Assembly (NCBI RefSeq): GCF_006345805.1
Contig: NW_021832010.1
Coordinates: 1 to 64,000, forward strand
From: Octopus sinensis
Taxonomy: Eukaryota
Length of the DNA: 64,000 nt
Direction of reading: 5' to 3'
Shown here: positions 1,481 to 63,115 of the stretch, in pieces
Position numbering within the stretch: the first letter of the stretch is position 1
Layout of the letters: the number at the start of each line of letters is the position of its first letter
Notes under the pieces: model-generated
Databases searched by the model: none
The model's input: only the letters and a program-made list of their open reading frames with translations
What the model was told of the DNA's origin: nothing
Translations under genes and position numbers: made by a program

Positions 1481-1717
1481 TTCACCTGGAAAAAATGTGA
1501 CACTTCTACTGCAAGCACCATTCGTTATTTCCAAGTAATGATTTAGTCCCAAAGAATTTTTCACGAAAAAAAGAAAGGGGCAGTAGACCTTCTATAACAT
1601 TCTCAAAATGAAGATGGATGACAAAAAAATCTTTATTAATATTACAATATTTGGATAATCTCTAAATTAAAATCTCCCTAGCAAATTAAGGATAGCACAA
1701 ATAATATTTATACGAAG

Positions 1718-1790
1718 GCCTTGTTAGCTCAGTCGGTAGAGCATCGGGCTTTTAACCCGAGGGTCGTGGGTTCGAGTCCCGCACAAGGCT
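1718..1790 (+). tRNA. tRNA-Lys (anticodon UUU)
   Basis: 73-nt cloverleaf: acceptor GCCTTGT/ACAAGGC, D-arm AGCTCAGTCGGTAGAGC, anticodon stem TCGGG/CCCGA with loop CTTTTAA, T-loop TTCGAGT. A T-rich Pol III terminator follows. Confidence 0.97.
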
Positions 1791-3015
1791 TATTTTATTT
1801 ATTTCAGAATAACTACCAAATTATATGTTCAAATATTCACGAAATATACTGTTAATATTTCGTCGCTCCATAAAAATTTATGTTTCATACATCATTTGTA
1901 TTGATCAATTGATTAGATCAATTTTTCATATTTTTTGATACCTGCCCCACTCAAAAATGAGTAGCCATGTCTAAGTAATGCTTGGTTATACTGTTACTTC
2001 TGTCAGACAAAGGTACTTTTTAAGAAATTAGAAGGATGATTTAAAAACCTACACTGGAGAATAGAATAAAGAGAAGCTATGGCTATTCCAGCTAATCTAA
2101 GTGGGGATCCCAAAAAGAGTTTCAATCTCAAATGATATAAGAGTTATTTGGACTAATTGACAATTCCATGAATGTGAGGTATCCGGAGAACTATAGTATT
2201 GACTACTCTTTCTATTCATTTTCTTGTTGTAAATACTTATAAAGCGCACTATACCGATTCTGCGCTTTTTTTTTTCTTTGTAGAATTTTCCAACCACTTT
2301 TTCCTAATGATACTCATATTCAGTTGTTTGGTAGACCACACTTTTTCTGTAAAATGTATAAAAAGACTTGGTTGTTTATCACCAACCTAGTTTTCTTTTA
2401 CAAAATTCTTCCTTTCCCCTATAATTGTAGCTCACTCTGATAGATTTTTGCCTTAGTTAGAATATAATCGGTCTTGGCAGCCAATAAGGACGAGTTCTCG
2501 CAAATTGGGCAGACTTTTTGGGGGCTGGCCCAAATACATGAGTTTATACGGCCCGCTTCTACAATATGGTCTGAATGTGGTCTAATGAGATTTCTTGTCA
2601 TCTTAATAAATTTAATTATTATTGTTCTGTAGATGTACCTCCATTTTCACTATAATAATAAATTTCTTAATAATGCGATTTTCTAAAAAGTGGCACCAGA
2701 AATACATAATACATAATGTATTTATACAGTCTACCTCGTTTTGGGGTACCGGGGTTTCCGGTTTCCCCAGATAGAGCGGTTTTTTGATATTAGCAAAAAA
2801 ATTAACGTTTTGTTAGTTTAAAACCCAAATCTTTGGTTGTTTAAAAAAAGTTGGTGGCATTTATTAAAACAATCAAGCCATCCGTTGGAAGCTTTGAATT
2901 CGGGTAAATTAAAAATTTAGCTGCATTTTTAGCGGTAGATTGTAATAATGGTCTGGAAACTACTAAATTATAATTTCTTAATCTATAAAAATTTAGGCAT
3001 ATTTAATAATTACTT

Positions 3016-5397: not shown

Positions 5398-5509
5398 ATA
5401 TAATCACAAAAGATGACCTAAATTATTGCAATGTCAATTTATTCACACGAATTTTATTATTATCAAAAATAATTTTAATAAAAAAATTCAATTTAATAAA
5501 AAAATTTTA

Positions 5510-7030
5510 ATGATGGAATCATTAATGTATCTACTTCTGGTTAACATGTATATCCCTCCCCCGGGCTCATGCCCGAAACCTTACACCATGCCTAACTTGT
5601 CAGCTTTGGAGAGCTTAAAGGACGTCGTCATATGTGGTGACTTAAATGCTAAACATCCCCTTTGGCTGTCAAATCAGTCCGCAGATACAAGAGGGTATTT
5701 ACTACTGTCGCAGTCTGGAAATTTGACAATCATAAACGACCCATCCAAAAATACAAGAACACCTCAAAGGATCTCTGACAACCCTACCTCACCAGATATC
5801 ACTCTCTGTTCACCACACCTTGCAACAACAATCAATTGGTTGGTGATCTACGACACTCGCAGTGACCACAACCCTATTTTGCTAAAAATCAAAAGAGAAA
5901 TTACAAGAAAAAAGAAGAAACCTGTTTACATATACAATCTGGCAAATTGGCAACTATTCCGATTGCTCACTGACCAACAATTCGGAAATATAAAACTGGA
6001 AGACTTCACCTCTCTTGACGCGGCTGTTGCTTATGTCAACAAGATCATTCTAGAAGCAAGAGCTAAGACTGTTCCTCAAAGACATGCCTCTTACACATGT
6101 AACTATGGAAGGAAGTCTCTTGTCAAGGAAAGAAATTGTCTTAAAAAAGTAGGGATCCGAACCCCCGAAGCAAGGATCCGTTTGAAACTGTTGAACGACG
6201 AAATAAAAGCTAGTGAATTCAAAACTCAAAGAGCGAAATGGAGGAAAGTACTTACGTCCCTAAACCGTAATCGGTCGACATCCGAGATCTGGAAATCTAT
6301 TCGGAACATTTCGAAGGCTAATGAGGAAACACCTGGAGACGACGAATTCAACCAAAAAGATCTAAATGCTTTAATAAAATACTACGCGAAAATCTCCCAC
6401 AAGGATCGTATGAAGACTGACCCATCCAATCCGCCGCTAAGGAAGCTGAAAAGTAAACATTCAACTCATTTCACTGAAAAAGAAGTATTGGAATTCCTAC
6501 ACCAAACAAAAGTAACATATTCACATGGTCCCGACGGCATTCCTATAATTCTCCTGAAAAACATAGGGAATGAGGGAATCAGTGTTCTCACAAAAATCTA
6601 CAATTGGTCGATTAACTACAACTCAATCCCAACGATTTGGAAATTGGCGAACATCCGCCCAATTTTGAAAAGTGGAAAACCAAAACAAGACCCGGCCTCC
6701 TTCAGGCCAATTTCCCTATTATGTTCCATGTCAAAAACTCTGGAAAAACTCATCCTCACAAAAATCATTAACAGCATTCCCAACAAGGCTTTCCAACATG
6801 GATTCAAAAAAGATTGTTCCACTGCAAGCTTCCTTAGCTCCTTGACTAACTTTATCCGTTCTGGCATTTCGTGCAAGCCAAGACATCAGAAAACTGTACT
6901 TTGTTCGCTGGATATCCACAAAGCCTTTGACGCTGTGCCTAGAAAAAACCTAGCATGGAAAATCCACCAATCAAACATCCCTGAAGACCTCAAGCTCTGG
7001 TTGACTAACTTCCTCAGCGGTCGAATTTAA
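5510..7030 (+). mobile_element. Truncated non-LTR retrotransposon ORF (APE endonuclease C-half plus RT N-half)
   Basis: APE motifs NMYIPP, GDLNAKH, SPDITL, SDHNPI; RT motifs GPDGI, WKLANIRPILK, SFRPISLL, QHGFKK, LDIHKAFD. The ORF stops before the YADD motif. Confidence 0.93.
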
Positions 7031-24195: not shown

Positions 24196-27100
24196 TTATT
24201 TTTTCCGAGCCAACGTCCTCTGCTTATTAGGATCCCCGACAATCTGTTCCTGAGTAACCAATCCCTTCCTCAGCCGAACTTCCTTCACAAGCTTGTCACC
24301 CAGTTGATCATCTCCACACTCCTCCCCCACTACCTCCCAATGTGAGAACTTGAACTGACAACTACACATCCCCCTCGTCCTACTTCTCATCTCCTCCTCA
24401 ATCCCGAATGAATTGACCATCGGAATATACCAATCACACATAAACACACTCAGATCATACAAGTCCTCACTGACCACCCTCCCTCCTCTCCTCCCAATAA
24501 CCCCTTTCACTTTCCCTGACCATTACTCTCCATAACTAACCAATCAGCCCACCCGGCACTCGGATACTCCCCAACAACACAGGCTGCACTAACCGTACTC
24601 CACATGATGACACCAATACACCCCAAATGGCATTCCTCACATCACAACTGACCTGTCCTGAGTGATGTGAGTGTCCTTCTAACTGTCGAATTGTGCAGCA
24701 TAATCCATGAAGGGGTTCCTCACACAGGGGGCCTGCCTCCATTGCTAACTTGAAACCATTAATCTAACAAATACAACATTCTGACATACAATTGAAGACA
24801 GAGTCGACTGATTCACCCCATCCATACCATTTATGAGAATATTTGTCGAATAAACAGCACAAATCTAATTGATGTTACCGATTACCTTATCAGAATCGAT
24901 CATTTCACACTCCTTCCTCAATAAATCGACACCAATGGAGTAGTCAGTCAACACTCGGACAACCTGAATGGGCAGTTGTTCCACACTTGAATCCAATAAT
25001 CATAATCTCACCCAATCTCACACTTTAGTGAATTTGAATGGACACACACAGTCAGGTCACCACACACCAAGCTTTCTCTGAATTGTACAATTGGGCGGGA
25101 AATCGAAAGTGGAACACGTGCAAATCTAATTCTGGTGGATCATTGAATCAACCGAGTCCTCAGATCCTCAATGCACTTGTCCAGATGCAACTGCCCAGCC
25201 ACTCTGATGACCTGTTCCCCCAAATTAGTCACGTGTGTCTCCACACAGGGGTCTGACAAATACAGCAACTCGAGCCCCTCCTTCAGAGCACTCATATCGT
25301 CTACAATGAGGGCAATGGGACCACCAATATTCTCAGGCTCCACCGAGACTGCCAGAATGGGAGTTGTCTCGTAGTAGAGGGGAGTCAAAGGGGGGAGATC
25401 TGCCCTGTCTGACAATGTGGCCGTCTTCATAAATCGACTTGACTCACTCCATGAGAACCCAAAAATATTCCCCGGACTGACCATGTCGACAGGAATCAGT
25501 TCCCGGCCCATAAAAATAAACAAATTCTCTATTTTAATCTTCTTTCCATGCTTATATGAGACAGGGAGTGTGGACGAGTCCTCAATCTAATTTACAAGTC
25601 CCACTTGTGTGATAACCAGTCGACTGTCATGTTTTGGTCCCAAAATAAACAGAGAGTCCCCCTTTCGAATTGTCCCACAAAATGACCGCGTAAAACCAAT
25701 ACAAAACTCAACAATATTTGATTCCGTTTGGTTAACCAATCTAATTAATTTAATATATATAATTTAACATTATTGCTAATTTATTACTAATTAATTATTA
25801 TAATACATTTGATATTTTCGTGGGAGTTCGTTTAGTGGGACGAAAACTAGTTTGCTCATAAAAGCAACCAAACTATTCCCATTAGGAGTAATATTAGTCA
25901 ATTCTACACATTGAATAAAACAATACACCATCCATCACATCACCAGACACCTCTCTTCCTCCCAATAGCCTACTAACCCTACGACAGTCCAAATCCAAGG
26001 GCGAAGGCAAAAACTCAACAACAACATCTAAAACACCCAAACCACAAAGAACCGAACACAGATTTATAAAGAGGCAGCCAATTCGACATTAGTAGAGACA
26101 CGTCAAAGGTCCCCACAAAGTTAACTTTATCAGACATTACCACTCTTCTTGCAATTCGACTGAACCGTTCAGAATCCCTTTGAAAGTAACTCACGTGGCA
26201 ATACTTATTATGTGCAGCTTCATAAACCGTCCAAATATTACTGAGAACAAAACTCTCAAAAATTGTCAGTTTGTGGCTTCCTGTACATTCCTCGAATTTT
26301 AGTGTTTTTGAACTCCAAAAATAATTTCCCCACATATGGGCGGCGACATCAAAGGCGGCTCGGTCTTTTATCTTTTTGGAAAACATTTCAGCGAATTGGG
26401 GAATACTTGGATTATATATATGTATTACGTAAAGGCCCAACCGTCCGTCGAGCTGCCGAAGATCACATTCCCCGCTTCAGGCGAAACATAATCGGCGGCA
26501 TTCTTTGAAGTACTTTGATCATGTTGGAATTGCTCAGATATAAAGTACTGGGCGATGATTGAATTTACCTAAAGTAATAAATTATATAATTAAATTACTT
26601 GTTCGACTATTTTTTTCAAATGTATAAATGATTGTTGTACAGTTAGATTGAGATGGGTGTACAGTTTGTCCATTTTGTTAAGAAAAATGACTATTTTGAG
26701 TCCCTCAGTCAAGGCTAGTCGTATGACTGAGTACGTCTAGACTGAGAGACCTCCCCTACCTGTGAACAGACTCCCTCCACCACATCAATGAGGATTATGG
26801 CGCCATCACACACCCGTATTCCCGCCGCTACTTCAAATGAAAAATCGATATGTCCAGGTGTGTCCACCAGGTTGATAAGATAAAGTGAATCTGCTATATA
26901 ATTAATTAGTTAATTAATTAAGACTAATTAATTAATTACTGTGGTTGTATAAGAGAGAGATGGCACTGGACTTCATAGTGATGCCCCTCTCTTGTTCGTC
27001 ATCCCTGCTGTCCATGTAACGAAGCTTAGAATGATAACAGATTGGGTAACCTCCCCTGCAATATTGTTGGAGATTATTCCATTAGATGCACAGAGAGAGT

Positions 27101-27231
27101 CAACAAGTGTAGTCTTGCCTTTAATATATATAAAGGGTAGTACCGTGGTCTACGTGGGCGAGGATACATATATTTCTTATACATTTCGTATTGGCTTGAC
27201 ATTTGGAGACCACGTCGTACAGTCTGTCCAT
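24196..27231 (-). CDS. EFL1: Elongation factor-like GTPase 1 (EFL1/Ria1), many micro-introns
   Basis: [13 protein letters not shown]|[91 protein letters not shown]-terminus RKGL...KQRTLARKK diagnostic of EFL1 rather than eEF2. Confidence 0.93.
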
Positions 27232-27309
27232 GTTACTATATATTTTATTACAAAATATACTATTTAATTTTTAGTAATTAATTTAAAATTAATTATTCTT
27301 GTTAGTAAA
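27232..27309. promoter_or_regulatory. 78-bp AT-rich bidirectional promoter between EFL1 and the HEAT gene
   Basis: The two divergent ATGs (27231 minus, 27310 plus) are separated by only 78 nt. Confidence 0.7.
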
Positions 27310-29636
27310 ATGGATGTGGATGAAATATACAGGAATATGCTGTGCAGTAATCAAAAGTTACAGCGAGACAAAGGCCTTATAAAATTATCTGAGAATTTAA
27401 ACCAATCAACGAGCAAAGAATGGATCCCCAAACTGTTGGAGACATTAGAGGACACAAACCACCCCTGGAATATCACATTCGGCTCACTCATATTCCTCAA
27501 AGAACTACTCCACTCCCAATTAGACACCAAACATGCCATAAATGTCACCAATATCCTCCTTCTCCACATGGAAGACCAGGAAGTGAGGGTTAGAGAAGAG
27601 TGTGGTTAACCTATATTTTTATTCCCGCCAAAATAGGCTCAGTCTTGGGTGTTCTTTACCAGAATAACGAGGAAAGCATTGGGTTTGTTGTTAGAAGAAT
27701 GTTGATTGATGGAATCAAGTCGAATGCAGTCAAATCTGCACAAATATCAGTCACAGTGCCATTAAAGAAAGAAATTGGCCCAAATAGGGCAGTTTGTGTG
27801 TCTCAGGTGGGTCAGTGGTCATCCATTCGTGTAGTGTGGGGTCTCGGCAGGTCAGATTGTGACTGAGTCCTCTGGCTGGAGACATCTCGACACTTGGCTG
27901 GGGTAATTAGTCCATGACATATCAGGGCTCTCTTCCTTGTGTTGGATTCTAATCGACACGTCTCTATTTTTGACAATGAAATGAATGCTACGGTTGACTG
28001 TGCATTTGCTACGGATAATCGTTTTGTAAAGGAAAAAATATTTCGGATTTTTGGACTGATTTTTGAGTCGTTGGATGAAAAGATTAGTTTTTTGATGTCC
28101 GAGATCAAAGCAAAGCAACTCAAAAGTGGCCTGTCTGATAATTGGAGCCAAGTAAATGACACTCTCCTTACAAATCCAGGTCAGACGGGCGGCTTTGGAA
28201 GCCACCTGGCAATTCTTCAAAGCCATTTCCCGCCTTGATTCATCAATGAAAAATAAATATTTATCGATTTTATTGCCACCTTTGTGTCTTAATAGGCACT
28301 ATTTGGGAGAGGGAGTCAGGTTGTTGGCTCAGAGGGCGTGGCCAGAGATCACTGGGAATGAGGGAAGGTCCCTGATTGAGCAGAACATGAAGGAGACGGT
28401 GGTTGGTTGGTTATATTTTGCAGGTTATTTATTATTTGGAGGAATGTCAGGCGGAGAATCACGCTGTGAGAGAATCGGCATGTTTGGCTGTGAACGAGTT
28501 GGTCTTGAAGGTCACAAAATGTGACAAAAATTGATAGATTGACCACCAAGTCATGGAACCTCATGTTAATTCATTTTTTGACATGTTTTTGACTTTATTT
28601 GGAGATGACAGTTGGCCTGTTCGACATGGTTAGTAATATATATTTATTATTCAGCTGCCTGTCTCTCCAGCAGTAGATTTATACTGAACTATCCATCTGA
28701 GGGAAGGTGATTATTCCTGATTATTCATTCTAGAACATTCATTGAACAGCTGTGGCCACTTTATCTGGTAAATCTCCGAGATTCCATATCCTACGTCCGT
28801 TCAGGGGCTGCAGTGGCCATTGCTAATGTGTGTGTGGCCTACAGTTATATATATAACATGTATGTTCTCAGGGGATTTCATTAAACGGGCATTGCGGGTG
28901 ATTACGAACGCATTCGACGCAATCAAGAAGCAGCCTGTAGTCCCGTTGCGCTTTAAAAACGTCGAGAAAGGACGGGCTACTTTCTCAGTGGCCAAGACAG
29001 TGCATGACAACGACGTGGAACTGCACAGTAATCAGCAGATGTACTCATGTGGGTCACTGGCTCCAAAGTTCTCCAGGAACACTTGTGGATGTTCATGTCC
29101 TTCAATATTATACAAGAAGGCAGAGGAGTGGGAGGAGGCTGAAGGGTTTGGGGGGTCAGTTTGATGGCATAGATGTCTCTATCTGTTGGCTGAGTTGTTG
29201 AAATGTGAGGAGGGGGAGGTGAGGAGTATATGTGGAGAGGACTGTCACGATTTACTCACATCCCTCGCTGTGGCATCCTCCTATCGGGAATATACCAGGC
29301 ACTGTGATTTCTTAAAGACATTGTGTGACTTGGTTGGTGCTGATTGGCTATTTAAGTTGCCTGGAATTGCGAGGGGAATTGGCGGGAAAAAATTTGAAGA
29401 ATATTTGGAATTGTTTTTTGAATCGATTTTTTATACATTGGTATAAATATTGATTGTAATTGAAGGAAGGTGATTTGGAGAGAATTAGCAAGTCGGGGGA
29501 GGTGTGTTTGCGTGACCTGGGATGTCTTGTTGGGATAAATGTGCTTTACTCTCGTGTAGAACAGTGGGACATTAGGCATTCACGTGGTTTGTTAGTTTTA
29601 GATGTTTGGGAGTATTAGAACGTGTTTTTAAGTCTT
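27310..29636 (+). CDS. Uncharacterised HEAT/ARM-repeat protein, multi-exon; 3' end approximate
   Basis: HEAT-type signatures EDQEVRVRE, GWRHLDTWL, NRFVKE, GLSDNWSQV|RRAA, LCLNRHYLGEGVR, AENHAVRESAC, DDSWPVR, DSISYVRSGAA, HSNQQMYSCGSLAPK; consistent GT-AG micro-introns. Confidence 0.8.
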
Positions 29637-29945: not shown

Positions 29946-30569
29946 TTAAAATTTATTACTCTCCCGTTTATTTTTTTGTCGACGATTGCAAAACCACACT
30001 CGAACAGCTTCTTTATCAATACAAAGACAACTCGCTATTTCTGAAATTCTCCCCAAACTTGGTTTCTGATCAATACAAAAATGATTTTCAAGACACTTCT
30101 TGGTGGACTCTCGAAAACAAGTCCGCTTTTTCCTTTTTTTAGAAATCCTTTTTATTTTATCCATTCTTTCAAAATAAAAATAATGTTCGATATATTTTCT
30201 GACCCAAATATTCAAAAGAGGTCTCAATCTGCACATATTCTTAAAAGACAGCTGCAGTAGTTCAAATCTACATATGGTTGTCTGGGAAATCACACATCCA
30301 TGCTCCCTTTCTAATTCGTACCCCAAATCAGCCTGAGTGTACCCAATTTTTAGTCTCAAATTCTTCAAAACACCTGCAAATTCCTTCATTTCAAGCACGT
30401 GACAATCGTCTTCACTCTTCAGCATATGGACAGGTGGATTAGTCCTTGATTTTATTGTCTCGGCGTTTGGAAAGTCACGTTTTTCGAGATTGGGTTGCTC
30501 GAATGCTTGTTGTATAAAGAAACAATTGATTTGATCAGTTGAATTGAAAAAAGTTATGAAATGATCCAT
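29946..30569 (-). CDS. POU-domain homeobox transcription factor (divergent, closest to class III/V pattern); an upstream exon is possible
   Basis: POU-specific GYTQAD...SQTTICRFELLQLSFKNMC; homeodomain KRKKRT...VRVWFCNRRQK. First in-frame ATG at 30569. Confidence 0.93.
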   Translation of the reverse strand: MDHFITFFNSTDQINCFFIQQAFEQPNLEKRDFPNAETIKSRTNPPVHMLKSEDDCHVLEMKEFAGVLKNLRLKIGYTQADLGYELEREHGCVISQTTICRFELLQLSFKNMCRLRPLLNIWVRKYIEHYFYFERMDKIKRISKKRKKRTCFRESTKKCLENHFCIDQKPSLGRISEIASCLCIDKEAVRVWFCNRRQKNKRESNKF

Positions 30570-31709
30570 TGACTTATTTCGCTGTAGAAATACATTTTGG
30601 CGCAAACATTTGGAATTTATATTGAATATATTATCGTTTTTTAGTTGAAAATGTATTTTTGGTCAAATTAATGACTATATTTATCGATGTTGTAGAATAT
30701 ATATGTATAGTTTGAATATATGATTAAGTAAATTAATTCTTCTGACCCAAATACCCTAAAAAATAGGTCTGAAGATTCAATGGTTTTAAATTCAGTTTTC
30801 AACATGCAAGTTTTTTAATATTTATTTTACAATGATTCCCCATTTTAGAAAATAATGTCTATTCTTAAATGTAATGAATTTCTAGCCAAACTGAGAGACC
30901 GATCTCAGATTTCCATAATTTTAGCTGCTTCTCAGGAAGTTCCGATTATTTTTAAATGTTTTTGTCTAGTCTATTTATGGAGTTATTTTTGATGTGATTG
31001 GTCGTACGCTCTATGTTCTTTTTTTGCAGTCTGCGGAGGAAGGTTTTTGGTAGATTATCTTTCTGTTAAGACTAGAATGTTCTGGTTTATTTGTTGTAGT
31101 CAATTATATTGGATCTGCGGTGATTTTCTATTTGGATTACTTATTTTATATTCAGAATTATTATATTTTTTGGTTCCCCATTTTCATGGGAATTTTATTT
31201 TAATAAAATTTTTATTTTGATATTAAAATATGTCTAGGAAACAATTTTATTAAATTGAAATTAAGAAGATACTATCGATGGACTATTTTAAGATTTATTT
31301 TAATTGATAATTTTATATTCATAAAACCTTTTTGGATTAGGTCAGGGATTCTTAACTGCAGCTTACTAGAATTCAATTTTATCTTCGAAAGATTCGGGAA
31401 AGTTAAATTGACTTATTTATCACGTTGAATTATTCGGATTGTTATGTTAAATTGGTAGATTTAAAAAAATTTTAAAAATTTTAATGCTACATAAATTTCA
31501 GTTCTCAACTTTCGAAGTCCATTTATTTGTACTTAAAAACACGGCTTAAAACAGAAAAAAAAATTCATGCATAATTTTGGATAACATGCTTTGAAATCTA
31601 TTGTTTTGCAGTAATTGACGAATTCAGGAATTACAAAATTGAAGACTCAATTTCGTTTTATCCTGAGCCGCGTCACGTAACATGTTGTTATCCTCTCCAT
31701 CCTTTAGAC

Positions 31710-39340: not shown

Positions 39341-40347
39341 AATTAATTATTACAATAATATAATAAAAATAAAACCAATTTTTATTTTAGTAAATATGTT
39401 AGAAGTGCTTTTTTTAATGCACATCGACAATTAATAACATTAAATACTTTGTACAAGTGATATTAGCAACTTGAGAAGTATTCTGAAATTTTTTTCACCC
39501 GGAATTCGCGAGATTTAGTGCCGTGTTGACTAAACAATACCAATGACGGCATGTGACTTACCTAATAAATATAAAAGTGAGGAATTTGCTGAAATATTAT
39601 GGATTACTGGAAGTATAGACTATCCCCGCATCCAGCTTGTCTTTCATTATATGAGAGAATACGGAATAAAGTCTATTTACCCCGTTACATTTAATTAATT
39701 TCTCTTTACAGAATAAGATAAGCCAATGGACATTTCCATTTACAACACTTTTTTCGAAATTATCATAACTTGATTCAATTATATTCCCTGACTAAAAAAT
39801 TAGCCCACACAGAAACTTTATTTTGTCTAAGCAGTCGAGTTTAATGACAAATGTCATGATGCCCTAATAAATCATGTTCTAGTCAAATATACCATGATGG
39901 GATGACCATGACCAAAAAGCATGAAGCTTTTTATTCATGCAAAGTGACCAAAAATAATACTGTCGACAATACATGGAACATTAATAATTAATGCATCTCT
40001 TATTGAGTTCCAGTTTTGGTTAACCAACTCAAAAATATATTAAAAATTATATAAAATAAGAAGATGAGTCCCCAGTTTATAAGATTCTTTTAGCTAACTC
40101 AAATATTTGTGATAAAATTGTACAAACAAAATGAAGTCTCCTAACATAAACCAAAATGACTGTTTAGATTTAACAACGCGCTACTAAAACAACAAGAAAT
40201 TCCCTTCTACATACTCACTACAGAATTTGGACATTTAAGTTTCCATATCTTAATAATAAAATGGTATGGTGTGTGTCTGTCTGCCTGTCTGTCTGTGTGT
40301 CTGTCTGTCTGTCTGTGTGTGCACACCAACTTCAAATTGGCAATACG

Positions 40348-41510
40348 ATGTCCTCGACTTACATGATGAGGTCCTTAAAACCTTCCCCCCAAAAAAATTA
40401 AAAAATTTTTCTGCATTTTGGTTAAAATGAACAACTACAATGTCCTCGACTTACATGATGAAGTCCTTAAAACCTTCCCCCCAAAAAAAATTAAAAAAAA
40501 ATTTTCTGGCATTTTGGTTAAAATGAACAACTACAATGTCCTCGACTTACATGATGAAGTCCTTAAAACCTTCCCCCCAAAAAAATTAAAAAAAAATTTT
40601 CTGCTGCATTTTGGTTAAAATGAACAACTACAATGTCCTCAACATACATGATGAAGTCCTTAAAACCTTCCCCCCAAAAAAATTAAAAAATTTTTCTGCA
40701 TTTTGGTTAAAATGAACAACTACAATGTCCTCGACTTACATGATGAAGCCTTAAAAACTTCCCCCCAAAAAAATTAAAAAAAAATTTTCTGCATTTTGGT
40801 TAAAATGAACAACTACAATGTCCTCGACTTACATGATGAAGTCCTTAAAACCTTCCCCCCAAAAAAATTAAAAAAAAATTTTCTGCATTTTGGTTAAAAT
40901 GAAACCTACAATGTCCTCAACTTACATGAAGAAGTCCTTAAAACCTTCCCCCCCAAAAAAAATTAACAAAAATTTTCTGCATTTTGGTTAAAATGAACAA
41001 CTACAATGTCCTCGACTTACATGATGAAGTCCTTAAAACCTTCCCCCCAAAAAAATAAAAAAAAATTTCTGCATTTTGGTTAAAATGAACAACTACAATG
41101 TCCTCGACTTACATGATGAAGTCCTTAAAACCTTCCCCCCAAAAAAATTAAAAAAAAATTTTCTGCATTTTGGTTAAAATGAACAACTACAATGTCCTCG
41201 ACTTACATGATGAAGTCCTTAAAACCTTCCCCCCCAAAAAAATTAAAAAAAAATTTTCTGCATTTTGGTTAAAATGAACAACTACAATGTCCTCGACTTA
41301 CATGATGAAGTCCTTAAAACCTTCCCCCCCAAAAAAATTAAAAAAAAAATTTCTGCATTTTGGTTAAAATGAACAACTACAATGTCCTCGACTTACATGA
41401 TGAAGTCCTTAAAACCTTCCCCCCAAAAAATCAAAAAAAATTATTTTCTGCATTTTGATTAAAATGAACAACGCGAATGTCCTCGACATTCATGATGAGG
41501 TCCATTAAAA
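40348..41510 (+). repeat. 94-bp minisatellite, 13 copies
   Basis: Unit atgtcctcgacttacatgatgaagtccttaaaaccttc(n)a(n)tta(n)t(n)ctgcattttggttaaaatgaacaactaca; period 92-97 owing to homopolymer length variation. Confidence 0.95.
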
Positions 41511-41724
41511 CCTTCAAGGCAAAAATCTCACGTATTAAGAATATCCTTGATGAAAACGACAGCGAGAATATTAACATGATGAACTCCCAATTATTCGCGA
41601 AAAGAAATTCAATTCATCCTATGTTTTTCTCTTTAAAATTAAATGCATATATCATTATCGACCATGAATCAAAATTAAAGCTATTATCATATTTGACTTT
41701 GACAGAATGTGCAATCACAGATTG

Positions 41725-41925
41725 CACGACTTTGAATAGAGTGTGCAATTAACAGATTTTGAAAAACCACTTTGATAGTTGAAACCACATTAGCACAATC
41801 ATTAACACAATTACCACCAATTGACGCACGACCTTGAATAGAGTGTGCAATTAACAGATTTTGAAAAACACTTTGATAGTTGAAACCACATTAGCACAAC
41901 CATTAACACATTTACCACCAATTGA
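41725..41925 (+). repeat. ~100-bp tandem duplication inside the outer Helitron
   Basis: gcacgac.ttgaatagagtgtgcaattaacag...accaccaattgac occurs twice; the inner Helitron has one copy (~43035-43150). Confidence 0.85.
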
Positions 41926-41963
41926 CAGCGCAATCAGAAGAATTTGCGTAAAAATATTAACTA

Positions 41964-43705
41964 CTAGCTCGGCAGCTCGCTTCGCTCACCGCGACCTAGA
42001 TCCTGCGGAGGGCCTGTTTCATCAAACAACTATAAGTTTATGTAGATGTATAAACTACCTGGTTTAATGTAACCCTATTCTATCGCCTGTTGATAAACGA
42101 TGTTTGTCGTCCGTCCTTCTTGGCATATATGAATAAATTTTCTCTTCTGCCTACCCTCGAGCATCCACCACATACAACTGTCCATGTGAAAAGCACTCAC
42201 TCTCTAAAAATAACCCAACTATCTTTAATGACTGTCCCTGGGCCTTGTTTATTGTCATTGCAAAACTCATCCTCAAAGGAAATTGCAGCCTTTTAAATCT
42301 AAATGGTAATTCATCAGAAATTATCGGAATTCGTGGAATATAAACATCCTCACCTCTATACTTACCTGTTAATATCGTCGCCTCTATTACGTTAGCCATC
42401 AAATTTTTGATAACTAACCTCGTTCCGTTGCATAATTTAGGTGCGCAAGATTTCGTAATAAACCACTGGAACGCCTATCTTTAACTTTAAAAGATGATTC
42501 GGCATTCCAGAGGGATCTAAGGAGTTTAAAAATTCAATCCGGTTGAATTTTTAGAAAATAACAAAAAAATAAAGAAAAACAAATAAAAATGAATAATTTA
42601 AAAACAAAAAAATAAAAAAAAAAAAAACAAAAAACTTTAAAAATTGTAAAATAGTATAAACAAAAAAAAATCTGCCGCCACGGCAACAACCAGTCTAATT
42701 TTTTAACAGCCAATTAAGATAATGCTTAAGACCTTTATAGTCCGGAGATTTAGCTTAGTGACCTTGATTAGACAAATCACTGCGGAAATGGGGCAGCCGG
42801 AGATGCGGCAGCAGAGTAGCAGCAGCCAAAAAAGCGACACACTAAAAGATTTAATTAATTACCTTAAGCTGACCGTTTTTTCTTCAGCTTCGTTTTTCCT
42901 CCTTCGGTATCTATTTAAAAAATTTTTTGAATAATAAAAAAGTTTAGGAAAAGAGGCATACCAAAAATAAATTCTATCTTTACGAAAAACTTAACTAAAT
43001 AGTTAATATTTTTACGCAAATTCTTCTGATTGCGCTGTCAATTGGTGGTAAATTGTGTTAATGATTGTGTTAATGATTGTGCTAATGTGGTTTTAACTAT
43101 CAAAGTGTTTTTCAAAATCTGTTAATGCACACTCTATTCAAGGTCGTGCAATCTGTAATTGCACATTCTGTCAAAGTCAAATATGATAATAGCTTTAATT
43201 TTGATTCATGGTCGATAATGATATATGCATTTAATTTTAAAGAGAAAATCATAGGATGAATTGAATTTCTTTATCGCGAATAATTGGGAGTTCATCATTG
43301 TTAATATTCTCGCTGTCGTTTTCATCAAGGATATTCTTAATACGTGAGATTTTGCCTCGAAGGTTTTAATGGACCTCATCATGAATGTCGAGGACATTAA
43401 CGTTGTTCATTTTAATCAAATGCAGAAAATAATTTGATTTTTTGGCGGAAGGTTTTAAGGACCTCATCATGTAAGTCGAGGACATCGTAGTTGTTCATTT
43501 TAACCAAAATGCAGAGAATTTTTTTTTAATTTTTTTTGGGGGGAAGGTTTTAAGGACCTCATCATGTAAGTCGAGGACATCGTAGTTGTTCATTTTGACC
43601 AAAATGCAGAAAATTTTTTTTTAATTTTTTTGGGGGGAAGGTTTTAAGGACCTCATCATGTAAGTCGAGGACATCGTATTGCCAATTTGAAGTTGGTGTG
43701 CACAC

Positions 43706-43736
<31 letters not shown>

Positions 43737-43762
43737 CACACCATACCATTTTATTATTAAGA
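41964..43762 (-). mobile_element. Non-autonomous Helitron (inner copy, inverted, nested in the outer copy)
   Basis: Same TC 5' end at 43762 and CTAG 3' end at 41964; inserted at an A|T without TSD; longer PIF1 fragment at ~42090-42530; 4 minisatellite units. Confidence 0.9.
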
Positions 43763-45959: not shown

Positions 45960-46260
45960 CGGCCACTCAGTCGATCGCGTTGTATTTCTTGGTCGATCGC
46001 CTTCGAATAATTTTTTATTTATTTCGCATTATCTTAATTTGCGATGTTACTAGAAAATATAATAAACAAGTATAAACAAAGATTTAACGATTTCAAGAAA
46101 TTTTTTACATTTTCTCGTCTCCCTCAAGTCGTTTGTTTTCTAGGAAATTCTTCTACAAATGTCAGTGAAGAGTTGAGTTGCAGCTTTGGCGACGATTTCT
46201 GGGGTTTCAAGAAAATTACATATTTTGCAGTTTCTTTGCTTCCGTGCTTACAAAGAAAGA
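45960..46260 (+). mobile_element. hAT remnant
   Basis: gtcgatcgc subterminal motifs and LENIINKYKQRFNDFKK. Confidence 0.4.
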
Positions 46261-46904
46261 CTAAAAAATGTTTCAGAATTTAGAAAGATTTTGACGTTGA
46301 ACCAATAAAAATTAATTATAAATCGTAAATAACATCATTTTAAAATTTAAAATGTCAAATGTCAAATGTCAAAATGTGCAGATTTATGTCCAAGAAAAAT
46401 ATCCAATTTTGATTGATTGGTATCTACGATTTTTAAGCTTTAGAACCCAAATGCAGCTCAGATAAATTCTAAGAATTTGTCTATTATTTTTAAGCATCTT
46501 AATACACAACCCGGTTAACGGATGACCATTTGACAGATTGCAAGGATAGACCAATAAGGTATACGAGCCAGTATTTGAAATAATCGTAAAAGAATTACAA
46601 TGCCAAAAATTCCATTAACTTGTAATTATAAAATAAAAATCTTTTTTATTAAAATAAATAAATTAATCGCCAAAAAATCGAAATATGAAATTGGTTTGCC
46701 GGTGTAAAAAGTTGGCCGCTCCTGCCGTAGAACATCAATTTTTTTTAGACTATAGTCATAAATTACTACATATAAAAAATTAAACATTTTATTTGGTCCG
46801 CCTTTGAACTAAATGTTTAGATTAAGGAAATTAGATTTTATTTTATTTATTATATAAATTTATGAAGAATTCAATATAATTCTATTTCAAATTCATATAA
46901 ATTA

Positions 46905-46912
46905 TTTGGCGG
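46905..46912 (+). promoter_or_regulatory. E2F-like site TTTGGCGG upstream of the PCNA-like gene
   Basis: Ends 31 nt before the ATG; a second TTTTGGCG lies on the minus strand at ~46667. PCNA genes are typical E2F targets. The motif is short and could be chance. Confidence 0.35.
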
Positions 46913-46943
46913 ATTCAATTTTAGATTATTTTAGTGGGTCTAA

Positions 46944-47905
46944 ATGTTTACAGCCGAATTAAAAAATTCTGGAATATTCCGTCGATTGTTAAACTGCTTG
47001 CGAGGATTGGAGTATCAGGGCAAATTCAACGTCAGAGAAAAAGGCATGGAAATGCAGGTTTGCGACGGAGAACAGCTCTCCGTGGCCACCTTGTTCTTCA
47101 CGCCTTTGTGGTTCTCTAGTTTTGAGGTCAATCCAGAATTATCCTTTGGACTGATACTTCCCCAGTAACCCATAACGTTGTATTTTAGTTTAAAAATTAT
47201 TTTTGATTGGATTGGGGATGACAAATATGTGGATATTCGGGTCGACAATTCTATGGAAGTGATTTCTATCTATTCAGAAAACGGTAACATATACGACCAC
47301 ACATAAACAATAAATTTCAAAAATTTTATTTAATTTATAAAACTAATTATATCAAAAAAATATATAGAATCAACTGGATCATTTGAATTATATCAAATAA
47401 ATAACATAAAATTTGACAGGATCACAGTTGATATAAAAGTAAGTAATAAGTATTATTTAGGACATTTCCTACGACGCAATAGTGGTGATGGAGTCAGCCA
47501 AATTCCAGCAGATCTGCACAAATTTTAGTTCAATGTTCAAAGAAATGACAATTCGGACCGACGGGGAGTCCGTGTCCTTTGTGTGTCTCCACAATGTCAT
47601 CAAAGGTAGGTGGGAAATGACATGTGATTAAGCTCACTTGGAATTGAAGAAGAGTGATTCGGGAGAGGACCCGGTGTGGATAGAATTCAATAGATATGCC
47701 TCGAGGAAGGTTTTGTTGATTCATTTGAACGAGTACTGTCGGGCTGCCTCTTTGTCTGAGTATGTGGTCATTAAGTTGTCCAATTCCTTTCCTTTGTGTA
47801 TGTTCTTGCTCGCATTTACTAGGCATTGAGTATAAGCTCCTCAATTCTTTCGATCAACTCGATGGCAGTCATCTTAGCTTTTATATTACTCCTTCTGATT
47901 TATAA
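46944..47905 (+). CDS. PCNA: Highly divergent PCNA (sliding clamp), 6 exons, 259 aa
   Basis: Exons 46944-47164, 47189-47283, 47368-47438, 47461-47605, 47633-47797, 47823-47905 splice in frame (780 nt). Colinear with PCNA: MFTAEL, LSFGLIL, YDAIVVMESAKFQQIC, LIHLNEYCRAASLSEYVVIKLSNSFPLCIEYKL, HLSFYITP. Confidence 0.88.
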
Positions 47906-48089
47906 TTAATATATTTTTGACTTTTATTTGATTCTGTTTACTCTCGATTGCTCGCCATTTTTATAACTTGACATTTTTTTGGAAAAAATGTTATTTTTAC
48001 TAAGAAAATTTAAATTCTTTTACTCCCCACGTTTCGATATTAAAAATCAATTTCATGACAATTAATTATTTTAGATTGAACAAACAAAA

Positions 48090-48480
48090 GATTCTCGAAT
48101 TAGTTTAATTTATGAGAAAAGTTGTCGTTTTTTGGAACTTAAATATGCATTAATTGATAATCATTATCTGGATAGATTAAATGGGATCTATTGGAGTTTA
48201 ACGCAATGATGAGATACTTTTATCGAAAGCAACTTAATTTGCTGTTTTAAGCGGTTTTTTTGAATTTAAATCCAGCAAAGGTTCATGGAAAAGTTCAAAA
48301 AAAGACACACTGTAAAATTACGATTTTTTATGTTAAATTGAGATATACTCAGATGTGTTCAAAAAAGAAAATGAGCACTAAAAAAATTATTTTTTCAAAA
48401 ATAAATGAATAAGTTTTATATTTGCTAAAAAACACAATGGTTGTGCTTCAACCGATGGATCAGAAGATCATTATTATTAG
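48090..48480 (+). mobile_element. pogo/Tigger remnant
   Basis: FKSSKG.MEKFKKRH (CENP-B HTH) and VLQPMDQKII. Confidence 0.7.
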
Positions 48481-50919: not shown

Positions 50920-52190
50920 TTAATGCTTTACCCTTTGATAGCCATCGAATTTCGGTATAAAGTAACAAATTTGTAAAGTTTGACCCCATTTCATCACAAA
51001 TGGGAGTAAAAATGCGAGATTTTTTGGGTCGACACAATTGTCAGACACATTCTTGGAAGCAATAAACTCTCTGACTGAATGGGCTGATGCTTCACAACCT
51101 CCTCTGACACCGACACCCAATTGGATTTTTTTAAAGATGCTCGGGTAGGAATGGGAGCTACGACTGCATAATATTTTGGCTGCAAGGCGTCTAAAAGTGC
51201 ACCCAACAGAAATCGGTCTAATTCCGCCGTCCTTTTTATTAAGGGCGGTGAGGCTTCCAGACATGAAGAGAGAACGTGCGAAATCAGAGATATGGCCACT
51301 GATGAAAAGGGTTATCAGGTCGCATAATGAATCAATTAGGTTCACACCTGCATCAGACGAGTTGAGTGATAAAAGGTCGCGAATGTGACCGGGACGAAGG
51401 CCGTCTAACCCCCCACTACTGGAGGGTCGGAATGATTTGAGATTATAAAGGAGCTCTTCTTTGCTCACTTTTTAATTAATATTAAACTTCAAAGAATAAT
51501 AACTTGTTAATTTGAAGGGTGCCTTTATGAACGAACTGCAGCGGTCTTTAATCTGCTGAGCGGCCGATGTCCTATTTACTGACTCCGTTTTATGAGGGGC
51601 AGCGCCCAGACAAACAGAAGGAAACGAAAATAGTTTGCACCAAGTTTATGGAAGATTGCTTTTAAGGGACTGATCGATTATGTCGGATAGCGTATCAGCA
51701 ACGCAGATTCGCGCAGATTTGGGAATTCTTGCAGGGATTACGCGGAGGCTTCGGGATTCGGAAAGAAGCGACAAGAACTTGTCGGGCGGGATGGGCGCCG
51801 GGTGAGGAGAAGGCTTAGGGATCCACGTGTGTGGGAGGCATGAGGGGCACTTCCAAGAAAGGATTGACGCCGAATCACGTTTAGTGAGTTTAACACACGA
51901 GAGGTGGAAAAACTGACTGCAAGAGGCGCAGGAGCGACCCGGTTTGCGAGAATTAACAGATTTACAAGATAAACAAAATGACATGGGGATAGCTACAGAA
52001 GAGTCCAATAGAATAGAGGAAAAGAGAATAAAAATGGGGAAATGGGATAGACAAGAATGAAAGGATAAAAGGAAAAAAGAAAAAGGAAAAAAAGAAAAGG
52101 GAAAGAGAGGGATGGAGAAGAAGGATAAGAGAGAGATAAACAGATGCAATGACAGAAATTGAAAACACCACAAGAAACCAAAAAAAAAAC
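50920..52190 (-). mobile_element. CRE-like retrotransposon 5' part: PHD finger plus RT N-terminus
   Basis: C4HC3 PHD (CLSC...CASCSQFFHLSC...WKCPSC); SSSGGLDGLRPGH, LTALNKKDGGIRPISVGCTFRRLAAK, QLGVGVRGGCEA. Confidence 0.85.
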
Positions 52191-52309: not shown

Positions 52310-53610
52310 TAATTTCTGCAGATGGATAATATGGAGATTCAAACTTATCCAGTCGCAACGAAGGATTTGTTCCAAAGTCTTTTTTAACTCGAACCTAAAC
52401 ATTAATTTTTATGCATACTTTATCACCAACACTAAATTCATACTTACTATTGTGAACATTCATTTTTTTGTTCATCGCTTTGTAATAATAAGAATTAGGA
52501 TCAATGGGGTTGATTTCGAACTGAAATCTTTTCGGACTTGTAACGAATAATTACAATCATCTACATATAGAAATTTAAATTACATGAATTTTCAATTGGA
52601 CTCGGACAATTGTTGCATCATCGACTTGATCAGGACTCAACAAATCATTACTTGAATTATCTAAGGAATAATTTTATAATTACGACCATAAAATATTGTA
52701 TTTATTCCACTTATTCCCCGGTATCTTTCAAAAGGGCTTTATTAGAAGATGAGTGGACAGAAATTTTATAACTGTACACTGCATTTTCTAATTTTTCCAG
52801 CCACTTTTTATTATCATTGTCGATCATTTTTGCCATTTTTCTTGTAATTGACTGGTTGAAGCGATCGACAATCCCTTGTGAGCGGGGATTGTTTGGCCTT
52901 CCGTGAATTCGTTTGATATTGAATTCCTCACATAGATTGGTCATTTCACGATTCTTGAATTCAGTCCCATTATCGGACTGAAGAAATTGACACGGACCAT
53001 TTAAGAAAAATAATGATCTGAGGTTTTCACAAACTTCATTTAAGGACTTAGTGTAGAGCGGCCTCGCAAATGCAAATCTATAAAAATTGTTAAATTTTTT
53101 AGTCTTGCCATTGGTACCGTCCATATCTCTCCTTTAGCATATTTTATCTATTAAATAAAAATGATTGATTTGCCTCGACTCAATTATTTGATAAAATGTT
53201 AATTATTTCAGCGCCCGGATAGAATGGAGACTCGAATTTATCCCACCGCAACGAAGGGTTTGCTTTGTTATAACAGTACACATTGCTTTTTCGAGGATTT
53301 TTTCATCTGTGTCTATCATTTTGGAGAGTTTTCGGGTGATGGTTTGATTAATATTGTTTGGTCTTCCATGTATCTAAACTACATTGAACTCTTCGCATAG
53401 ATCTCTCAGAGACACATTCTTGAATTCTGAACCATTATCTGATTTCAAAATTTTGCAAGGTCCATATAGGTGGAAAAGTTATCTTAAGTTGTTGCATACT
53501 TCTTTTGAAGATTTATGAAAAAGTGGTCTGACAAATGCAAATCTGAATAAATCGTTGAGAGACCTACTACCAACCTACTATAAACATCGATGACTGTTAA
53601 AATCCAAGAC
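52310..53610 (-). mobile_element. Two tandem diverged Ginger-like integrase remnants
   Basis: GPCQFLQSDNGTEFKN...IHGRPNNPRSQG (52711-53124) and GPCKILKSDNGSEFKN...IHGRPNN (53270-53610); shared downstream block at ~52315 and ~53210. Confidence 0.85.
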
Positions 53611-54720: not shown

Positions 54721-54889
54721 AAGATGCAATTTTGTTTGTTAATATACACCCATCGACATTAAAATCCGGACAATTAATAAATCGTCATTTTTATTATCAA
54801 ATTTAGAAAAAAAACCTTTGAGCATAATATTTTTTTCTATATTCTTATATTTAAAAAAATATATTTACAAAAGTTTTATAAAACGATAT

Positions 54890-55495
54890 TTAAGGGGACC
54901 AAGAGGGGACCCGGCATCTTTCAAACCGATTTCCCTGTTATGTACGATGTCAAAAATCCTGGAAAGACTGATTCTTGGCAGAATAGAAGATTTCTTACCC
55001 GAAAGACATTTTCAACATGGGTTTAAGAAGGCGAAGTCCACGTCTTCGTACCTTCAATCCTTGTCAAACTTCATCTGTACCGGTTTTGCCAGCAAACCGA
55101 GACACCAAAAGACAGTGCTCTGCTCCGTCGACATCCATAAAGCCTTCGACTCCGTCTCGAGGAAGCTCCTCTCAAGGAAGATATTCCAATCCGATTTTCC
55201 TCTGAAGCTAAAAATATGGATTACCAACTTCCTAAGTGGACGAAGAGGGAGGGTGTGCCTCGGTGGTCTAAAGTCCAAATCTCGTCTTCTACCCAACGGA
55301 GTACCTCAGGGATCCCCCTTATCCCCGGCCCTCTTCAACCTATTTTTGGAAGACCTCCCTCCCTCGACAACAATGACATTGTTCTCTCATACGCGGACGA
55401 CAAGGTACTAGCCTCACGGGAACGGGACATCCAGAAAGCCTCTGAAAGGCTCCAAGCTAACTTGGATCGGCTGAACCTATGGCTGACGGACAACT
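54890..55495 (+). mobile_element. Non-LTR RT fragment, same family as 5510-7030
   Basis: DPASFKPISLLCTMSKILERL, QHGFKK, DIHKAFD, GVPQGSPLSPALFN, SYADD after a frameshift. Confidence 0.9.
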
Positions 55496-60552: not shown

Positions 60553-61709
60553 TCAAAAGGCTCCCTAAAGTAATAACACAACCACATACTCCAGAACCCC
60601 CAAACTTGGTGGCAAACTTGGCCATCATTGCCTGCACTTTGGGGTTATTCTGATATTTCGAAAAACACGAAGGGTCCTTCTGCATTTCCAACAACGCAGT
60701 CAACACTTCCGGGTCCTTCATTGCCTCCATCATTTCTGGATCCTTAAAAATATCCCCCAAATTGCCCATCCCCGGCATTCCTCCACACTCAGATGGCTGT
60801 TTAAAAGTCCCATTTCCCTTCTCATATTCCTTCCTTGCCTTGGCTGCCCTGCGACGACGGGCATTCAATTCACGTTTTTCCTGTCTTAGAACTTGTCTCC
60901 GATTATGTTGTTGTATTCTGTGGACAGAACTGGAGATATCCTTCACCCATTGGTCAGTTTCCTCATCAAAATCGAGTTTTAATGCCAGTGATAGGTCAAT
61001 AAAGGCATCCTCCAATCGGCCTATACACATCCTGGCTCTCCCACGGTATTTATAGGCCAGCCGACAGTCAGGATTGATAGTCAGGGCAGTCTCACAGTCC
61101 TGGATTGCCCCCAATGGACGAGACAGGTTTATTAAACATCTACCCACAGTCGAATTGATTTAATACAAGGCTCGTTTAGCGTATACACCTGCCTGTGATG
61201 GATTCCACTGGAGAGCCTCCGTGTAGAGTTCAATCGCGGAGGTCAAATCTCCGTTTTTATAGGCAGAGTTGGCAGCCGTGGACTTGGAGGTGGACTCAAC
61301 CCACATTTCATCACTGATCTACGGTTGGCTTCGTATATCAACCTCCTGTTCTTCATCGTAAGGGATAGACGGCAGGGGAGGCTCTGTTTCACATTCCATT
61401 AAGTTTATAAAGTCAATTTCTGATTTTTAGTTTTGGCGGGAAAACCGAGTTCACTTTCTTGGCTTTCTTCTTCCTCTTCTGAGCTTATTATTGGATCGAC
61501 GGGGGTCTCTTCTGGTTGTGGGGGTGTTGGGGTTGGGGGTGGAGGGATTTTGGCGCCAAATCTGTGTGGTTTTGAATGTTAAAAATTTCCCACCCTTCTA
61601 GAAATTCTTTAAAAAAGGCTAATTCAGGACTGTGGAGAACATCCGGGCGGGATTTACAATATTTTACGAATATTTCCAAATTTTTCAGCTGTTCTTGTGA
61701 TAAGTTCAT
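60553..61709 (-). CDS. ST13: Hsc70-interacting protein Hip (ST13)
   Basis: N-terminal dimerisation domain (LHSPELAFFKEFLE|LGAKIP), TPRs (AIELYTEAL, AIQDCETALTINPD...YKYRGRA, KLDFDEE), GGMPGM, STI1 domain (DPEVLTAL...KYQNNPKV). An inferred last intron gives ...GGSGGAF*. Confidence 0.95.
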
Positions 61710-62434: not shown

Positions 62435-63115
62435 ATGTCGGAAGTAGTTAACTTTAAATGTGTCATTGTAGGAGACCAGTATTTTTAATTTATTGTTTGT
62501 AGAGCCTCTGGTAAAACCAGTTTGATTGTTAGTTACACAAGCGACGGACCAGCCACCAGCAAAGTCCCCCGGATTCTTAAACCTTCTTTTACTAAGCTGA
62601 TGTGTCAGGGGAAGTCTGGCCCTACTCCCATCAAATTTGAAATAATTGATACTTCAGAACATGCAAGTTCAGACCAAGCATGGCCACTGTTATATCCTGA
62701 GACAGTTCGCTTTTATATATTGACATAAGGATATATTTATTATATGTTGTTCAGTTGTGGAACCTCAGTCATTTAATGTTCTGCCTTCTAAGGTAATCGA
62801 GTTATGTGATCCTCAGTGGACTTGTCACCTTCCAAAGACCACCCCATTTATTGTTGTAGGGACCAAGACTGACCTTAGAGAAAGTCAGGATGTCATCGAT
62901 GATTTAAATAGACGTGAATTGAAATTAATTTCTTACCAAAAAGGATTAAAGGAATCTAAAAAACTTGGTATTTTAGTTTTGATTTATCAGGTGCTTCAAA
63001 ATATATTGAATGTTCTTCTACAACTTTTTATAATGTTCGAAATGTATTTCAAGTAGCTATTGATATGTTGTTAACCACGACGAAAGAATTGGACAATACT
63101 TGTTACATGCTATAA
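62435..63115 (+). CDS. Atypical Rho-family small GTPase, 5 exons, CAAX CYML
   Basis: KCVIVGDQASGKTSLIVSYT, IIDTSEH, LYPET|DIFIICCSV, FIVVGTKTDLR with Rho insert, GASKYIECSS, NVRNVF, CYML*. Confidence 0.88.

Follow-up and report, generated by a model that had tools for sequence, protein, structure and literature searches.

An intact, very derived PCNA-family gene with glycine at position 164 in a contig of the Octopus sinensis assembly

We analysed a window of 64,000 nucleotides (positions 1 to 64,000, forward strand, of contig NW_021832010.1 in the Octopus sinensis assembly GCF_006345805.1), in which a preliminary description, made from the letters and a list of open reading frames (ORFs), had singled out an extremely divergent PCNA at 46944-47905. 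Judged by its sequence, the locus is a real, intact PCNA-family clamp gene and a very derived one, encoding a 259-residue protein that has glycine where human PCNA has K164. We favour, at a probability of roughly 0.55, the reading that the gene was inherited vertically and is the only replicative PCNA of a parasitic animal that evolves fast, has a reduced genome and carries ultra-short introns.

Three-frame translation of positions 46500-48400 resolved six exons and five GT..AG introns on the forward strand, the positions of which are given in Table 1. The spliced exons form a 780-nt coding sequence of 259 codons plus a TAA stop, uninterrupted and colinear with PCNA as the preliminary description had proposed. 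A stop codon (TAA) lies directly 5' of the ATG, and read-through of any unspliced intron reaches a stop within a few codons, so every intron must be spliced out. The longest single ORF inside the gene is only 74 aa, which explains why the gene was absent as one entry from the ORF track, a point on which the earlier reading was also correct.

The spliced protein has the tandem PCNA_N and PCNA_C layout expected of a protein of about 260 aa, with both domains exceeding their Pfam gathering scores: PCNA_N (PF00705) matches residues 1-117 with 45.7 bits (E = 6.5e-12; cut-off 20.3) and PCNA_C (PF02747) matches residues 128-242 with 63.3 bits (E = 3.2e-17; cut-off 23). Rad1 (PF02144), Rad9 (PF04139) and Hus1 (PF04005), the subunits of the 9-1-1 clamp, gave no Pfam match even at E<=10. 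A phmmer search against all PDB chains returned 85 matches, and every one of the 60 listed is a PCNA aligned end to end, with residues 1-256 of the query spanning residues 1-253 of human and fungal PCNAs. Among these listed matches A. thaliana PCNA2 is best (3.3e-23), followed by several fungal PCNAs at about 1e-22, human PCNA at 2e-19 and budding yeast PCNA at 1e-9. The 9-1-1 subunits share the clamp fold class and lie at a comparable sequence distance from PCNA, but the window protein differs from them in passing the PCNA_N and PCNA_C models and in having PCNA-type termini. We thus reject a 9-1-1 subunit, an identity that the preliminary description had left to be checked, on the ground that the Pfam matches and the listed PDB matches are only to PCNA.

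The two-domain layout of about 260 aa, from Met1 to the C-terminal strand that binds PIP boxes, is common to this protein and to canonical eukaryotic PCNAs (human, 1AXC; S. cerevisiae Pol30, 1PLQ; A. thaliana PCNA2, 2ZVW), as are the hydrophobic core, Y114, the pocket residues I128, Y133, P234, Y250 and P253, and basic residues at 13, 14, 20 and 217. For conservation statistics we used a reference set of 83 PCNAs, which is essentially fungal (81 sequences), as returned by a profile search, and the resulting figures are fungi-biased to that extent. Of the columns that are at least 90% hydrophobic in this set, 75 of 88 are hydrophobic in the window protein, compared to a background of 46%, and 100 of 120 conserved polar columns are still polar.

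The sequence itself has moved very far. A global alignment gives 60 identities over 261 positions (about 23%) with human PCNA, and 10 of the first 40 residues match, as had been estimated by eye. The two proteins are colinear and ungapped over residues 1-185, so that human residue numbering is valid for the window protein through residue 185. Identity is 25% to A. thaliana PCNA and 15-25% (median 21%) to the 81 full-length fungal PCNAs, whereas human and Arabidopsis PCNA are 66% identical and human PCNA has a median identity of 40% (range 20-60%) to the same 81 fungal proteins. Canonical animal, plant and fungal PCNAs are 40-66% identical among one another, and the window protein is far below this. 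At the 53 columns where fungi, human and plant together show at least 90% identity, it keeps the residue in 16, has a conservative change in 19 and a radical change in 18. Beyond residue 185 the length differences begin, with three residues deleted from the back-face loop at 184-195, six to seven residues inserted in the last beta-hairpin and no acidic C-terminal tail.

No close relative was found in the sequence databases searched. A word-indexed search of a 5.8-billion-cluster protein database with the spliced protein gave no match, there being no PCNA in it that shares enough 5-mers. The spliced protein, the exon-1 ORF and another ORF of the window had no exact entry in protein collections, and a metagenome scan for PCNA relatives found nothing. 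When exon 1 was run through a full HMMER search of 1.84 billion representatives, the only matches were four tandem-repeat artefacts.

The hairpin that carries K164 in human PCNA, ISCAKDGVKF, corresponds to IRTDGESVSF in the window protein, which places a glycine at position 164. Global pairwise alignment, phmmer alignment to PDB PCNAs, and MAFFT alignments with 5 and with 84 sequences all agree on this placement, and lysine occupies the position in 81 of the 83 reference PCNAs. There is no lysine between K156 and K177 of the window protein (residues 157-176), so a small shift of register cannot restore K164. Were the modification pathway retained in the genome, K183 and K184 at the base of the back-face loop would be speculative candidates for a substitute acceptor. 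As far as alignment can decide it, the absence of K164 reported in the preliminary description is robust.

Lysine turnover extends over the whole protein: only one of 16 human lysine positions is still a lysine (K240, which is K237 in the window protein). K13, K14, K20 and K217 have become arginine, encoded by CGT, CGA, CGA and CGG, respectively, in a genome of 34% GC. K77, K80, K110, K117, K168, K248 and K254 have been replaced by uncharged or acidic residues, and several of these positions are known to be acetylated, methylated or SUMOylated in the yeast or human protein. Nearly every lysine that serves as a modification site in other PCNAs has gone, and the clamp looks as if it has been stripped of regulatory lysines.

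The basic lining of the inner channel is depleted as well. Of the nine conserved basic positions on the four inner helices that contact DNA (K13, K14, K20, K77, K80, R146, R149, R210 and K217), only the four arginine-substituted ones (13, 14, 20 and 217) are still basic, and the other five are lost (K77>I, K80>D, R146>Q, R149>T and R210>I, the last being I207 in the window protein). New basic residues, K76, K143, R202 and K203, stand near the lost positions and may partly compensate for them. The net charge is -11, compared to -17 for human PCNA. This depletion and the near-total lysine turnover, neither of which was mentioned in the preliminary description, are the more striking features of the protein.

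The surface that receives PIP-box partners has fared better. Tyr114 of the trimer interface is conserved, and five residues of the PIP pocket are identical (I128, Y133, P234, Y250 and P253, the last three being P231, Y253 and P256 in the window protein), with conservative changes at V45>L, L47>V, L126>V, L251>I, A252>T and M40>C. Clear changes are confined to K254>S, to the variable positions 127 and 129 of the interdomain connecting loop and to the missing acidic tail. At sequence level the pocket is among the better preserved surfaces, and because of this the protein may be argued to recruit PIP-box partners still. The phrase "remodelled PIP-binding surface" used in the preliminary description was accordingly too strong. 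Its pairing of YYLAPK with FYITPS holds in both pairwise and MAFFT alignments, but its pairing of LGIP with ITVD was two residues out of register, since human L126-G127-I128-P129 aligns with V126-D127-I128-K129 and ITVD occupies residues 124-127.

An E2F-like site 5' of the gene, also noted previously, is present as TTTGGCGG, and two further TTTGGCG cores occur upstream (Table 1). In animals and plants, PCNA genes are known targets of E2F. The core is found 13 times in the whole window, against 5.8 +/- 2.2 in shuffled sequence, and three cores in 760 nt compare with about 0.15 expected from the window density (Poisson P of about 5e-4, calculated post hoc). These sites are putative E2F sites identified by motif match, and caution in reading them is warranted because a perfect palindromic E2F-type sequence, TTTGGCGCCAAA, occurs at 61549-61560 within coding sequence. 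That palindrome lies inside the first coding exon of an ST13/Hip gene, where it encodes LAPK, and is probably coincidental.

Table 1. Exons and introns of the PCNA gene and E2F-like motifs upstream of it, in window coordinates.
Feature	Position	Strand	Remarks
Third TTTGGCG core	46185..46191	+	about 755 nt 5' of the ATG
Second TTTGGCG core	46668..46674	-	inverted, about 270 nt 5' of the ATG
E2F-like motif TTTGGCGG	46905..46912	+	-39 to -32 from the PCNA ATG
PCNA exon 1	46944..47164	+	ATG; codons 1-73 and 2 nt of codon 74; MFTAEL, compared to human MFEARL, from residue 1
Intron 1, 24 nt	47165..47188	+	GTAACC..TTTTAG, phase 2; unspliced frame reaches a stop at 47166-47168
PCNA exon 2	47189..47283	+	ends at the first nt of codon 106
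Intron 2, 84 nt	47284..47367	+	GTAACA..ATATAG, phase 1
PCNA exon 3	47368..47438	+	through codon 129; completes the N-terminal domain and covers most of the interdomain connecting loop
Intron 3, 22 nt	47439..47460	+	GTAAGT..ATTTAG, phase 0
PCNA exon 4	47461..47605	+	codons 130-177 and 1 nt; contains Y133 and the IRTDGESVSF hairpin (G164 for K164)
Intron 4, 27 nt	47606..47632	+	GTAGGT..ATTAAG, phase 1
PCNA exon 5	47633..47797	+	to the first nt of codon 233; back-face loop 3 residues shorter than in human
Intron 5, 25 nt	47798..47822	+	GTATGT..ACTAG, phase 1
PCNA exon 6	47823..47905	+	codons 233-259 and TAA; 6-7 residue insertion in the last hairpin; ends HLSFYITPSDL, no acidic tail

The introns bear on where the gene came from. 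In coding-sequence coordinates they follow nt 221, 316, 387, 532 and 697, the last corresponding to 706 in human numbering. Two fungal PCNA loci that we exon-mapped exactly, from Sporodiniella (Mucoromycota) and Mycena (Basidiomycota), both have a phase-1 intron in codon 107, and intron 2 of the window gene is likewise in phase 1, in codon 106, in a variable loop. We take the introns of human PCNA to follow nt 221, 319, 387, 582 and 706; on these presumed positions three introns are identical (221, 387 and 706), one is offset by a codon and one differs. The presumed human position 319 gains some support because the fungal intron in codon 107 agrees with it. Five spliceosomal introns, one of them a single codon from the intron shared by the fungi, are in keeping with vertical descent of the window gene.

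PCNAs of large DNA viruses and archaea are about 20-30% identical to eukaryotic PCNA, and the K164 switch is often absent from them. The window gene differs from these in having five spliceosomal introns and in scoring better against cellular eukaryotic PCNAs: a giant-virus PCNA scores 56 bits against the window protein, compared to 95-105 bits for cellular PCNAs, and is itself 31% identical to human PCNA and so closer to it than the window protein is. A scan of viral contigs yielded this giant-virus PCNA and one mis-binned eukaryote-type PCNA, neither nearer to the window protein than cellular PCNAs are. The intron positions, one of them nearly shared with fungi, and the weaker viral match thus lead us to reject a retro-copy or a viral capture; an ortholog or a DNA-level duplicate fits. 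The eukaryote-type gene is on a 3.8-kb contig classed as viral (IMG/VR UViG_3300010980_000172, positions 1576-2435); it is split by an intron and 53-56% identical to human PCNA, and the contig is probably a mis-binned eukaryotic fragment.

The host lineage was approached through intron length and base composition. Introns of 22-27 nt are found both in the PCNA gene and in a neighbouring Rho-like gene, and the window is about 34% GC and rich in transposon remains. A 2026 survey (PMC13644364) reports myxobolid myxozoans and Dicyema japonicum as the only animals with introns shorter than 30 bp. In dicyemids the median intron is 27 bp long, exon/intron structure is conservative, POU genes are divergent and evolution is very fast (PMC6543705), and the Dicyema japonicum genome is 36.7% GC with 49% repeats and many LINEs (PMC6736024), to which the window conforms. 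The host is probably either a dicyemid or a myxobolid, and we lean towards a dicyemid. Rfam and tRNA scans yielded no taxon marker. For dicyemids and myxozoans we found no publication that deals with PCNA, Rad18 or translesion synthesis, nor did the literature yield a usable table of exon sizes for PCNA genes of animals.

How much of the divergence belongs to the gene and how much to the lineage was estimated from five window proteins, each compared to its best solved vertebrate homolog, with the reservation that fragments were used and that the values expected for the families are general background figures. PCNA is the only replication protein in the window. Identities are 51% for the POU class III domain (146 aligned residues), 41% for the Rac-like GTPase (174 residues), 40% for an EFL1 domain fragment (122 residues), 38% for the Hip/ST13 TPR region (90 residues) and 23% for PCNA (253 residues). 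The suggestion in the preliminary description that the divergence may be gene-specific therefore stands in that PCNA is a clear outlier of the five, and is weakened in that the Rac-like GTPase and the POU3 domain are likewise eroded. Conservation well above 41% and 51% is the rule for Rac-type GTPases and POU3 domains, and because both are unusually diverged here the lineage seems to erode even the slowest proteins. It is also isolated in the databases, since the 148-aa exon ORF of EFL1 found no match in the word-indexed search of 5.8 billion proteins.

If the gene is the sole replicative PCNA, its product would assemble as a head-to-tail homotrimer and be loaded by RFC onto primer-template junctions. 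Pol delta, FEN1 and ligase I would be tethered through the pocket that I128 and Y133 of the interdomain loop form with P231, Y253 and P256 of the C-terminal strand. The arginines at 13, 14, 20 and 217 hold the charge of the lysines they replace, and with glycine at 164 the clamp can be neither ubiquitylated nor SUMOylated at that position. Transcription would be expected to follow S phase from a promoter bearing the E2F-like TTTGGCG(G) motifs.

Several observations weigh against such a role as the only replicative clamp. The window covers only 64 kb, and a canonical PCNA elsewhere in the genome is compatible with it. A clamp that alone serves replication would be heavily burdened by the loss of five of nine near-invariant channel basics in addition to K164, K168 and K254. 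Among the five window proteins PCNA has diverged most (23% compared to 38-51%), as expected of a paralog released from constraint, and the database searches provided no conspecific or sister-species sequence for comparison.

The most serious competing explanation, which we regard as a real possibility at rather less than even odds, is a specialised paralog: a DNA-level duplicate that keeps the ancestral introns, while another locus of the genome encodes a canonical PCNA with K164. Relieved of the demands of replication, such a copy would evolve fast and could serve a narrower role, for example one that is stage-specific or concerned with endoreplication, repair or a non-DNA scaffold. Divergent second paralogs of this kind are known beside a canonical PCNA1, as PCNA2 in Drosophila and in apicomplexans; they keep the PCNA fold and the two-domain layout away from the canonical sequence, as the window protein does, and to our knowledge the divergence of the window protein is larger than that of the animal example, Drosophila PCNA2. 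Besides the outlying identity of PCNA among its neighbours, a paralog is favoured by the radical changes in 18 of the 53 near-invariant columns, some of which hold lysines that contact DNA or are modified. It is also favoured by the Rho-family GTPase of the window, which lacks the catalytic Gln and the P-loop Gly in the manner of a divergent paralog and suggests that this genome keeps such copies. Against a paralog, the protein keeps its PIP pocket, Y114 and hydrophobic core as a working clamp would, the E2F-like motifs are clustered upstream as at replicative PCNA genes, and the candidate lineages have few genes and evolve very fast. Fast lineages, yeasts among them, also carry a sole PCNA of low identity, that of S. 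cerevisiae being about 35% identical to human, and the 81 fungal PCNAs, whatever their copy number, range over 20-60%. A tblastn search found no second PCNA-like locus within the 64-kb window, which is weak evidence on the same side.

That the locus is a pseudogene, a decaying or recently dead PCNA copy still open by chance, is very improbable. The extreme divergence and the loss of many invariant residues would be in keeping with decay, but a spliced frame of 259 codons is open in 34% GC DNA with five intact introns; at this base composition stops would make up about 7% of random codons, and by our own arithmetic the chance of such an open frame is about 3e-9. The coding sequence is 39.6% GC (GC3 48%), well above the introns at 25% and the flanks at 27-32%, and 85% of core hydrophobic columns are kept. 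The substitutions are, furthermore, selective rather than random, with the pocket kept and lysine-to-arginine changes that hold charge. We reject a pseudogene on the open spliced frame, the conserved core columns and the coding GC signal.

Least probable of all is that the gene is not a cellular PCNA, being instead Rad1, Hus1 or Rad9 or a PCNA captured from a virus or transposon: it is no more similar to PCNA than other clamp families are and it sits amid transposon debris, but set against this are Pfam and listed PDB matches to nothing except PCNA, a PCNA length, N-terminus and C-terminal PIP strand, five spliceosomal introns of which one is a codon away from an ancient PCNA intron position, and the greater distance of the giant-virus PCNA.

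The Rad6/Rad18-PCNA-ubiquitin switch for damage tolerance is conserved from yeast to humans and plants, and modification of PCNA at K164 is regarded as a universal eukaryotic control of translesion synthesis and template switching. The fullest form of the sole-clamp reading, in which this is the animal's only PCNA and hence a metazoan clamp without K164, with almost no regulatory lysines and with a depleted basic channel, is one we hold tentatively and consider rather less than an even bet. If it is right, damage tolerance in the host would proceed without the Rad6/Rad18-K164 switch, which would have been dispensed with or rewired. The protein would then separate the indispensable features of the clamp (fold, trimer interface and PIP pocket) from its regulatory add-ons, and a natural animal PCNA lacking K164, with its pattern of lysine-to-arginine changes, would be a ready-made separation-of-function allele. 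It would also bear on how a genome-reduced, fast-mutating parasite tolerates replication-blocking damage. Were the gene a paralog instead, it would provide an example of clamp subfunctionalisation in animals, a more modest result yet an uncommon one. We consider the interest of the locus moderate, and it would be sharply higher if this is the sole PCNA of the genome.

Other genes were identified in the window. The Rho-family GTPase gene occupies 62435-63115 (+), with exons at 62435-62478, 62503-62704, 62730-62967 and 62991-63115 and introns of 24, 25 and 23 nt, and encodes 202 aa ending in the CAAX box CYML; its best PDB match is human Rac1 (41%). Its P-loop reads GDQASGKT, with Gln at the Gly12 position, and its switch II reads DTSEH in place of DTAGQ, losing the catalytic Gln, which suggests an atypical Rho protein, possibly deficient in GTPase activity. 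The POU-domain gene at 29946-30605 (-) is a single ORF whose best matches are class III POU proteins (147 bits; 51% over the POU-specific domain and homeodomain). An EFL1 (EFTUD1-like) gene lies at about 24539-26476 (-), where its 148-aa exon ORF matches human EFL1 with 83 bits and 40% identity. Adjoining it is a run of same-strand ORFs at 26953-29443 (+) that have the look of HEAT-like helical repeats and gave no match in Pfam or the PDB. The 24-30 kb region has a higher GC content (about 40%), and its GC skew is opposite over the two divergent genes, the coding strand being G-rich in both.

The repeats of the window include a composite element at 40270-43740, the left end of which consists of (TGTC)n and a 95-bp tandem array of 12.4 copies (40344-41515), and the right end, in inverted orientation, of 3.4 copies of the same 95-bp unit (43359-43678) and (ACAG)n. 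Between the arrays is an ORF fragment at 42154-42474 (-) that resembles a Pif1/Helitron helicase by eye and had no Pfam match; the element may be a transposon with satellite-bearing inverted ends. A LINE ORF at 5426-7030 (+) has endonuclease (Exo_endo_phos_2) and reverse-transcriptase domains. Reverse-transcriptase-like ORF fragments and a fragment of an integrase core (rve) are found among 50920-51468 (-), 54818-55411 (+) and 52714-53133 (-), and hAT-like and helicase-like ORFs were recognised by eye. A tRNA-Lys gene (anticodon TTT) at 1717-1791 (+) is the only Rfam or ARAGORN match in the window.

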